This document shows positions 8,777-9,757 of a stretch of DNA of 64,000 bases, piece after piece. Positions within the stretch are counted from its first letter, which is position 1, and every line of letters begins with the position of its first letter. This stretch comes from Lepidodermella squamata (Eukaryota; Animalia; Gastrotricha): assembly GCA_047495785.1 (NCBI GenBank), contig JBLDXI010000054.1, positions 3,038,001 to 3,102,000 on the forward strand. The letters run 5' to 3'. Position numbers and translations under genes: made by a program. Under the pieces are notes generated by a model. The model was not told the origin of the DNA. It worked only from the letters and a program-made list of their open reading frames with translations, and did no database searches.

Positions 8777-9757
8777 ATGAAAATCTTTGGTTTTTGCGTT
8801 TTCGTGCTTTTGCTCCGATCGGAAGTTGAAGCTCAGGTATTTGTACCGAAGTCAAAACTAGGCTTGAAATTAGTTGAAAAATATCCCTAGTCGTGTTCTT
8901 GTAGCTCCACTTCGAGCACTGCAGCTTTTATCAAGTCCAACCGAGGGGTTCTCAGTTCTAATGGAATAGTTTTCATCAAGGCGAATAATTTGGAAATCGA
9001 GCCATTAAAAGCGTGTTACTGCGGCCGGGCGAGATCAGTTCGATGGGCGCTATCTATCAACCCGATACCTGGGCAATCCTCCGTTTGCAGATCACACAGG
9101 CTGAGCAGCCTAAGTGGCTCTGACTGGTCGATATCCGATGAAATTTCCGACATCAATCGCTACCCCATAGGTGGCGACGTTCGGCTTGAATGGAATGATT
9201 CAACGCGCAGTGGGACGATCAATTTCAGAATTCGCGGCGAACAGCCTAGTTCGAGCTCCGTTTCGTGGGAAATCGACCGCCGAAGTTCAGCTTGGTTCGC
9301 GGTGCCTCTAGCTAGGTCAGAAAGCGATTTGAAGCAATTTGATTCAAGCGGAGTTCCTCTCACGTCCTTTGATAATGGCTACGGCGTGTTTCAGCTGAAA
9401 AATCCAACTTGTCAACAAATTTGGAACTGGAAGGCGAATGTTGAAGAGGGTGCGAATAGGATTGAATCGGCCTTGCGTGCTGCTAAATCGTGGATGAACC
9501 AGCAGAAAAACTTTGCGGCTAGCTTAGATCAATCAGCCAACACTACTGTACCTTCAAGACGCGAGGCGAACTGTCGATTCCAGGAGGGAACTCGCCAAAC
9601 AGTTGAAGATGCAGTTGCTATTAAAATATTCGGCGGTGCGAGCCGCGGTAATTACTGCGCTTGGGACACTTCAGCGAAGGCTTGGGTGTTCAATGTGCTA
9701 GGTGATCGAGGTGAAAATTACGTCAACAAAGTTTGCCTTAAGGTGGCTGCTGGGTGA
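8777..9757 (+). CDS. Secreted lysozyme-like / lytic transglycosylase (SLT-like) protein; exons 8777-8836 and 8891-9757
   Basis: Exon 1 is a 20-aa signal peptide (MKIFGFCVFVLLLRSEVEAQ). A 54-nt phase-0 GT-AG intron joins it to an open frame. SLT-like motifs: ARSES (putative catalytic Glu at 9320), GYGVFQL, NWKANVEEGA, and C-terminal NYVNKV. Confidence 0.7.

Follow-up and report, generated by a model that had tools for sequence, protein, structure and literature searches.

A predicted secreted, two-domain GH23 lysozyme-like protein of probable bacterial toxin ancestry encoded in the genome of the gastrotrich Lepidodermella squamata

We analyzed a 64,000-nucleotide stretch of the genome of Lepidodermella squamata (contig JBLDXI010000054.1, positions 3,038,001 to 3,102,000 of the forward strand; hereafter the window, to which all coordinates refer) and, within it, the gene located at 8777-9757. 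This is an intact, host-integrated animal gene, predicted to consist of two exons and to encode a secreted protein in which an immunoglobulin (Ig)-like sandwich precedes a GH23 lysozyme-like domain. The pattern seen in its sequence is far beyond chance (E = 4.5e-13 in the first homology search, 1031 relatives in a profile search and structural Z scores of about 10 to lytic transglycosylases). It is likely that the combined observations are best explained by a secreted, two-domain GH23 enzyme that belongs to a eukaryotic clade, has bacterial toxin ancestry and was acquired in an old transfer which did not include the immunity gene.

Gene structure and predicted product

The preliminary description of this locus had proposed a signal-peptide exon joined to an open body by a 54-nt phase-0 GT-AG intron, and our reading of the gene, in which the intron is likewise a prediction, agrees with this arrangement (Table 1). 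The first exon encodes the peptide MKIFGFCVFVLLLRSEVEAQ, which has the hydrophobic core IFGFCVFVLLL (mean Kyte-Doolittle value 3.16) and V-E-A at positions -3 to -1, and an in-frame TAA (8771-8773) is located two codons 5′ of the ATG at 8777. The intron ends with an in-frame TAG (8888-8890), so that an unspliced message would terminate after 37 codons. The first approx. 199 codons of exon 2 contain no in-frame ATG and the modelled fold is confident from about residue 7 of this exon; translation must therefore begin in an upstream exon, for which exon 1 is the evident candidate.

Once spliced, the gene would give an uninterrupted frame of 308 codons that starts with a leader and is closed by a stop codon, and the splice signals are canonical. 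The predicted mature protein (31.8 kDa) is basic, with an isoelectric point of 9.0, and contains nine cysteines. One sequencing run, guessed to be of RNA, contains 74% of the words sampled from 8600-9900, which is compatible with a transcript footprint and proves nothing.

The order of SLT-like motifs pointed out earlier was traced within exon 2, in the numbering of that exon, to (i) A141-x-x-E144-S145, (ii) G163-x-G165-x-x-Q168-L169 and (iii) the terminal Y277-V-x-K-V.

Fold and catalytic residues

An AlphaFold2 model of the protein built on a 109-sequence alignment (A2) reached a predicted local distance difference test (pLDDT) value of 94.9 and a predicted template modelling score (pTM) of 0.91, the catalytic domain being very confident throughout. 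With 16 sequences as input, a first model had attained a poor pLDDT of 57.5, and the Foldseek matches obtained with it were meaningless.

After Foldseek, an exhaustive structural comparison (VIA-align) was needed to reveal the matches with GH23 enzymes, which accounted for nine of the 12 top structural matches (Z 7.4-10.1; Table 1). The Ig-like domain matched MAdCAM-1 (4hbq, Z 7.9) and filamin (7ouu, Z 7.2). Both domains together (residues 9-286) matched proteins of Pseudomonadota in the ESM Atlas, 280-330 residues in length, with template modelling (TM) scores of 0.65-0.74; in one neighbour cluster of this collection, SLT was carried by 17% of the members.

When the A2 profile was compared with the PDB, the top three matches were g-type lysozymes (E = 0.0036, 0.0085 and 0.011), and E144-S145 was aligned with R-E73-S of the goose and swan enzymes. 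In the model E144 is placed at the C-terminal end of a helix (residues 137-145), and the E144-S145 pair is at least 90% conserved among the 109 sequences of A2. G165 is invariant in the family, and G163 and Q168 are at least 90% conserved. The invariant D161 aligns with the Asp of the W-G-D motif of g-type lysozymes, and the position matching goose Asp97 is occupied by Thr in the family and by Lys in the window protein. A GH23-type fold with a predicted catalytic Glu (codon 9320-9322), as the preliminary description had it, is thus well supported by the model, though the curated SLT model misses the protein; the latter is neither a c-type nor an i-type lysozyme, which also bears out the earlier view.

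Of the 26 columns conserved throughout the family the window protein retains 22, and of the 55 that are conserved among eukaryote-type members (see below) it retains 49. Motif II is present as G165-V-F-Q168, and motif III, which in the family reads Y/F-N-G, is F247-G248-G249, with the loss of the Asn. This N248G exchange at a position where Asn is found in 92-97% of the family, the T170K exchange in motif II, the missing turn Pro, and the odd number of cysteines in the mature protein are features that would fit a catalytically weakened or inactive derivative, whose role would be recognition or adhesion through the binding of peptidoglycan or some other glycan; catalytic activity itself is predicted from the sequence and the model. 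We consider such a derivative rather unlikely, since the protein still has its catalytic Glu-Ser pair as well as 49 of the 55 group-conserved positions, the catalytic domain is modelled with very high confidence, and the terminal branch of the gene in the trees described below (0.75-0.86, compared with a median of 0.55-0.64) is not unusually long.

Table 1. Features of the gene at 8777-9757 and structures matched by its predicted catalytic domain. Residues are numbered from the start of exon 2 unless stated otherwise.
Feature or matched structure	Position in the window or PDB entry	Strand	Remarks
Exon 1	8777..8836	+	ATG at 8777; 20-residue signal peptide, predicted cleavage after V-E-A
Predicted intron	8837..8890	+	54 nt, phase 0, GT at 8837, AG at 8890
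Exon 2	8891..9757	+	288 codons plus TGA stop; whole mature two-domain protein
N-terminal Ig-like beta-sandwich domain	8909..9241	+	residues 7-117; structure matches
GH23 (goose-lysozyme / soluble lytic transglycosylase-like) catalytic domain	9245..9754	+	residues 119-288; structure matches
Predicted catalytic Glu codon (gaa)	9320..9322	+	E144, equal to E164 of the precursor
Motif II, G163-Y-G165-V-F-Q168	9377..9394	+	equivalent of GLMQ of SLT; family consensus GYG-x-x-Q-L-T
Gly248 (motif III, Y/F-N-G in the family)	9632..9634	+	cleft position, diverged here; Asn in 92-97% of the family
MltF	5aa1		Z 10.1 vs residues 119-288
MltC	4c5f		Z 10.1 vs residues 119-288
Slt	5o2n		Z 9.6 vs residues 119-288
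MltE	4hjy		Z 9.1 vs residues 119-288
Slt70	1qsa		Z 8.9 vs residues 119-288
Salmon g-type lysozyme	4g9s		Z 8.8 vs residues 119-288
MltD	8rhe		Z 8.2 vs residues 119-288

Relatives of the window protein

A word-indexed protein search returned 15 unannotated proteins of approx. 330 residues (E = 4.5e-13 to 2e-7), which have in common the pattern Q-E-S...P-L-T-S-F-D-N-G-Y-G-x-x-Q-L-T-N-P...I-W-N-W-K. The number of relatives rose to 1031 at E <= 1e-3 (322 at E <= 1e-10) in a profile search of 1.84 billion representatives. The nearest relatives of the 308-residue product, found by BLASTP (E = 1e-52 to 1e-30), form a group separate from the first 15 proteins and carry N-terminal signal peptides or membrane anchors.

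Homology within the family extends over the full length of the proteins: a bacterial member (P0133) aligns over residues 1-305, and the family alignments span both domains. The eukaryote-type group is distinguished by an insertion of approx. 26 residues with conserved Cys (Q-R-x-Q-A...V-P-V-P...N-C-x-F) and by its conserved cysteines, and the VgrG-linked bacterial proteins described below are devoid of both the insertion and these cysteines.

Two-domain bacterial proteins matched the window protein with E values of 1e-13 to 1e-33 (BLAST/HMMER), and of 1e-25 to 1e-30 when a profile of the eukaryote-type group (A3) was used, compared with profile E values of 0.004-0.011 for canonical single-domain g-type lysozymes, from which the protein is set apart. 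Homology and profile searches, together with reference genomes, indicated that the deeper relatives are bacterial, as had been supposed from the sequence. In the reference genomes, the closest bacterial kin belong to Victivallaceae (33-39% identity), Verrucomicrobiota, Zixibacteria and Hydrogenedentota.

Eukaryotic relatives and phylogeny

Two eukaryotic relatives could be named by cluster look-ups: protein P0054 (XP_055349665.1) of the tardigrade Paramacrobiotus metropolitanus, and protein P0076 of the nematode Panagrolaimus sp. PS1159, labelled "Transglycosylase SLT domain-containing" in UniRef. The word-indexed search with the eukaryote-type profile provided no further named matches. Other members of the group (P0041/P0166, P0080, P0052 and P0088) are encoded by metagenomic contigs on which prokaryote-style gene calling yielded sparse or broken-up genes. 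Four metagenomic loci (L007, L008, L009 and L012) look eukaryotic, with intron-split genes and sparse gene calls. In L012 the homology shifts frame across about 95 nt, and in L008 an upstream exon encoding the Ig domain is approx. 850 nt away from the body, which points to spliceosomal introns inside the bodies of these genes. The intronless body noted in the preliminary description is thus a property of the window copy that is not shared by these two relatives.

The large intron of L008, the gene of the nearest relative, also contains (at 1735-1995) two tandem copies of an approx. 110-nt element, both ending with ...TTTTTTGATTCG-AAAATCTAACCAGCTGAGT, which may be a small repeat or a miniature inverted-repeat transposable element (MITE).

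A careful maximum-likelihood tree of 65 rows was computed under LG+C20, with 11 proteins from bacterial genomes added. All six rows known to be eukaryotic, and none of the known bacterial rows, were placed on one side of a branch with an ultrafast bootstrap (UFBoot) value of 76 and a Shimodaira-Hasegawa-like approximate likelihood-ratio test (SH-aLRT) value of 96, a split present in 78% of the bootstrap trees. In a quick tree of the same rows the eukaryote group was a clade of 25 rows (SH-aLRT 97), located inside a clade of signal-peptide-bearing bacterial proteins (SH-aLRT 95). Two prokaryote-like subclades had appeared among the eukaryote rows, at unsupported nodes, in a first quick tree; they fell outside once the bacterial genomes were added. 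The sequences favour the view that the window gene is one diverged member of this clade, within which the branching order around it is weakly determined. The BLASTP and phylogenetic checks suggested at the outset placed the gene in a eukaryotic clade nested in a large, uncurated bacterial family, and its best sequence matches were two-domain proteins and not animal g-type lysozymes.

The presence of tardigrade, nematode and eukaryotic metagenome genes in one clade nested in bacteria suggests an old transfer, or a few transfers, into small invertebrates, and does not favour acquisition by this animal alone. A recent transfer private to this genome, after which the gene captured a signal-peptide exon of the host, would be in keeping with the single-exon body, with a phase-0 intron placed exactly at the junction of the signal peptide and the mature protein, with the lack of any relative above 50% identity (over 158 residues), and with the lack of a paralogue in the window. 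Such a recent event is nevertheless improbable: the gene is grouped with those of the tardigrade, the nematode and other eukaryotes and with no bacterial sequence; proteins of the best-matching bacterial genomes (33-39% identity) are no more similar to its product than the eukaryote relatives are (36-50%); its composition is host-like; and capture would have been unnecessary for a protein whose nearest bacterial and several eukaryote-type relatives already have leaders or anchors.

The horizontal transfer proposed in the preliminary description is consequently upheld as to its bacterial source and not as to its restriction to this genome. Recruitment of a signal exon, the second step proposed there, may have taken place but is not required, because the N-terminus of the nearest bacterial and several eukaryote-type relatives is already a signal peptide or membrane anchor; an inherited leader, with later gain of an intron at the cleavage site, explains the structure equally well as exon capture.

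Genetic context of the bacterial relatives

We examined 14 loci of bacterial family members (L001, L002, L004, L011, L013, L015, L017, L019, L021-L023, L025, L029 and L030). In every case the next gene 3′ of the enzyme gene, often with overlapping stop and start codons, encodes a signal-peptide-bearing protein of 212-403 residues. These partner proteins represent several unrelated families which co-vary with the subclade of the enzyme, as in polymorphic toxin-immunity pairs. By analogy, the gene pairs look like those of a periplasm-acting toxin and a putative immunity protein.

The genes of P0010 and P0003 are located directly downstream of VgrG within type VI secretion clusters, and P0013 bears an N-terminal PAAR domain; this link with VgrG and PAAR marks some Pseudomonadota members of the family as type VI secretion effectors. 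The linkage concerns distant relatives (L001, L004-L006 and P0013) and was not seen at the closest bacterial relatives; closer relatives with their own signal peptides (L011, L013, L015 and L017) occupy ordinary bacterial neighbourhoods. We rejected type VI effectors as direct donors of the animal gene: the VgrG-linked proteins constitute a separate, well-supported clade, and the bacterial proteins closest to the animal one carry signal peptides and come from Victivallaceae, Verrucomicrobiota and Zixibacteria. A co-transferred immunity gene was also ruled out, since the bacterial partner proteins had no match in the 64-kb window. Absence of the partner gene from the window is as expected for a domesticated copy.

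Searches of the PDB with profiles A1 and A2 and with P0003 alone revealed no solved structure for the family, and there is no NCBIfam model for it.

Genomic surroundings

The gene is followed, at a distance of approx. 2.9 kb, by the 3′ end of a plexin gene (12641-19390, - strand) with at least four coding blocks and with Plexin_cytopl, Plexin_RBD, TIG and PSI domains. On the other side, the open reading frame (ORF) at 7757-8224 gave no Pfam match; of the spliced genes expected on both sides, the multi-exon plexin gene downstream was therefore confirmed. The guanine-plus-cytosine content of the coding sequence (0.49) is close to that of the plexin exons (0.51), and that of the flanks and the intron is 0.31-0.34 (0.33 for the intron). 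The composition is host-like and ameliorated; this is an integrated animal gene and not contamination. No second copy of the gene was found within the window, nor were bacterial neighbour genes or an immunity gene detected around it.

These data make it very unlikely that the locus is not a working gene, that is, a product of bacterial contamination or misassembly, or an unexpressed relic. Such an origin would be in keeping with the absence of the protein from a collection of 5.8 billion proteins, and transcription of the gene is a prediction; against it, the 308-codon frame is intact with its leader, splice signals and stop, the gene lies between AT-rich non-coding DNA and the multi-exon plexin gene on the same contig, the stretch is present in sequencing runs of two independent studies, and both bacterial neighbour genes and an immunity gene are missing.

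Elsewhere in the window, at least eight ORFs of approx. 320-350 residues are arrayed in tandem, roughly every 2.5 kb, in the region 32760-54260 (+ strand), which has a strong negative AT skew; all five of the ORFs that were scanned matched transporters of the MFS_1_like / MFS_1 type (E = 1e-27 to 1e-39). The array is followed by a GH20 beta-hexosaminidase gene (54754-57229, + strand) made up of two coding blocks and an intron of approx. 860 nt, whose best named relatives (39-47% identity) come from fish, molluscs, ticks and amphioxus alike, which points to a poorly sampled lineage of animals as the host. At 58572-61265 (- strand) there is one long ORF of 897 residues, for which the only match was a weak one that fell short of the Pfam cutoff (E = 4.6e-4), to neurotransmitter-gated ion channels in their transmembrane region.

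Proposed history and function

According to the explanation that we favour, a bacterial gene for a cell-wall-attacking toxin would have been transferred to an animal lineage without its immunity gene, and would afterwards have become ameliorated, acquired introns and branched out into paralogues, some secreted and others anchored in the membrane. The protein would be secreted through the endoplasmic reticulum after removal of the signal peptide, and Glu164 of the precursor may act as the general acid in cutting the beta-1,4 bond between N-acetylmuramic acid (MurNAc) and N-acetylglucosamine (GlcNAc), MurNAc-beta-1,4-GlcNAc, of peptidoglycan, either by hydrolysis, as in a lysozyme, or by intramolecular transglycosylation, as in a lytic transglycosylase. 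The enzyme would in this way kill or digest bacteria. The activity, the substrate and the biological role are all deduced; defence against bacteria or their digestion would be a reasonable supposition as to the role.

Several observations weigh against this explanation. All curated models miss the protein: Pfam gave nothing at E <= 10 for it or for the 15 first relatives, SLT (PF01464) included, and there was no match in NCBIfam or in single-sequence PDB searches with the window protein. Foldseek, run with the model of pLDDT 94.9, listed mostly Ig-like matches, with no lysozyme-like or transglycosylase structure among them and nothing at E <= 0.001. The departures in the region of the cleft (N248G, T170K and the missing Pro of the N-P-x-P turn) mean that activity may be altered or lost, and neither the chemistry (hydrolase or lytic transglycosylase) nor the substrate (peptidoglycan or chitin) can be read from the sequence. 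The monophyly of the eukaryote group has moderate bootstrap support, and the origin of the rows of the 25-row clade is known for six and not for 19. Finally, splicing at 8836/8891, transcription and secretion are predictions for which the junction and expression were judged from the DNA sequence.

The family as a whole may have a broader significance. We tentatively propose, at slightly short of even chances, that it is an undescribed family of interbacterial toxins acting as peptidoglycan glycosidases, with cognate periplasmic immunity proteins, delivered by type VI secretion in Pseudomonadota and exported by the Sec route in bacteria of the Planctomycetes-Verrucomicrobia-Chlamydiae (PVC) group. 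Microscopic animals (tardigrades, nematodes, the present animal and possibly rotifers) would have domesticated it on a single occasion, or handed it on from one to another, and it would later have given rise to antibacterial enzymes that are either secreted or anchored in the membrane. It would then be a glycan-cleaving counterpart of the Dae (domesticated amidase effector) proteins. If this is true, the animal enzymes should remain open to inhibition by the bacterial immunity proteins. Were the enzyme active, it would count among the means by which small invertebrates fight or feed on bacteria, and would offer a tractable test of how an interbacterial toxin is adapted to export from eukaryotic cells, by way of a signal peptide, disulfides and paralogues with membrane anchors. 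As regards annotation, relatives labelled "uncharacterized" can be renamed lysozyme-like.

Comparison with known systems

The window protein shares with bacterial GH23 lytic transglycosylases (MltF, MltC, MltE, Slt70 and MltD; PF01464) the catalytic fold (Z 8.2-10.1, with a root-mean-square deviation of about 3 A over 119-132 residues), as well as a single catalytic Glu, placed where a helix ends and directly preceding Ser, with a G-x-x-Q motif further on. It differs from them in that (i) it is not matched by Pfam SLT at E <= 10, (ii) an N-terminal Ig-like domain is added, (iii) a 26-residue Cys-containing insertion is present, (iv) motif III is F-G-G instead of Y-N-x-G, and (v) the gene is encoded, and the protein predicted to be secreted, by an animal.

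Animal goose-type lysozymes have in common with it the fold and the catalytic Glu (Glu73), a secreted and basic character, and a presumed antibacterial or digestive role. The similarity to these enzymes is marginal (E >= 0.0036 with the 109-sequence profile), the position of goose Asp97 is Thr or Lys, and the window protein is a member of another family, in which it has two-domain bacterial proteins as close relatives. That it is an ordinary, vertically inherited and merely divergent goose-type lysozyme is hardly credible, even though the top three PDB profile matches are of this type, the salmon enzyme reached a Z of 8.8, and the metazoan g-type clade has itself been placed within bacterial lytic transglycosylases by structure-based phylogenetics, which traces it to an ancient bacterial transfer (PMC12855814): the g-type matches (E = 0.0036-0.011) fall far behind the bacterial two-domain proteins (1e-13 to 1e-33), which share the Ig-like domain and the full length, g-type lysozymes are single-domain proteins of approx. 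185 residues as against two domains and 288 residues here, and bacterial lytic transglycosylases match the model equally well or better.

Some distant bacterial members of the family, encoded behind VgrG or equipped with PAAR and followed by a gene for a small signal-peptide protein, resemble in this respect the type VI effectors Tge1/Tse3 and Tge2 with their Tgi immunity proteins. No solved type VI effector appeared among the sequence matches of profiles A1 and A2 and of P0003 alone, or among the listed fold matches, and neither Pfam nor NCBIfam has a model for the family, which suggests that by sequence it is an effector family separate from Tse3/Tge1 and Tge2. We found no paper in the literature describing the two-domain family or its toxin-immunity context. 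An expression table for the rotifer Adineta vaga includes a lytic-transglycosylase-like gene flagged as horizontally acquired (PMC12220480), which may or may not belong to this family.

Animals are already known to borrow bacterial cell-wall weapons, such as Dae amidases, GH25 lysozymes and probably g-type lysozymes. The type of event is therefore familiar; what is new here is a two-domain GH23-like family outside the curated databases, with bacterial relatives that bear the hallmarks of toxin-immunity systems, and the newer element would be, at the family level, a glycosidase analogue of Dae. Dae proteins derive from type VI Tae genes that were passed to eukaryotes, ticks and mites among them (Hayes et al., bioRxiv 10.1101/2020.04.10.036376). 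The logic appears to be the same in both cases: an interbacterial toxin that attacks peptidoglycan, with immunity partners and type VI links, would have entered animals, its immunity gene being left behind, and would there have been directed into a eukaryotic secretion route. The two differ in that a GH23 fold, predicted to cleave glycan strands, takes the place of an amidase, and in that the closest bacterial relatives here are proteins of the PVC group with Sec signal peptides, not VgrG-linked proteins. Judged by this analogy, Dae is the closest functional and evolutionary precedent for the window gene, and the proposed bacterial origin of metazoan g-type lysozymes is another.

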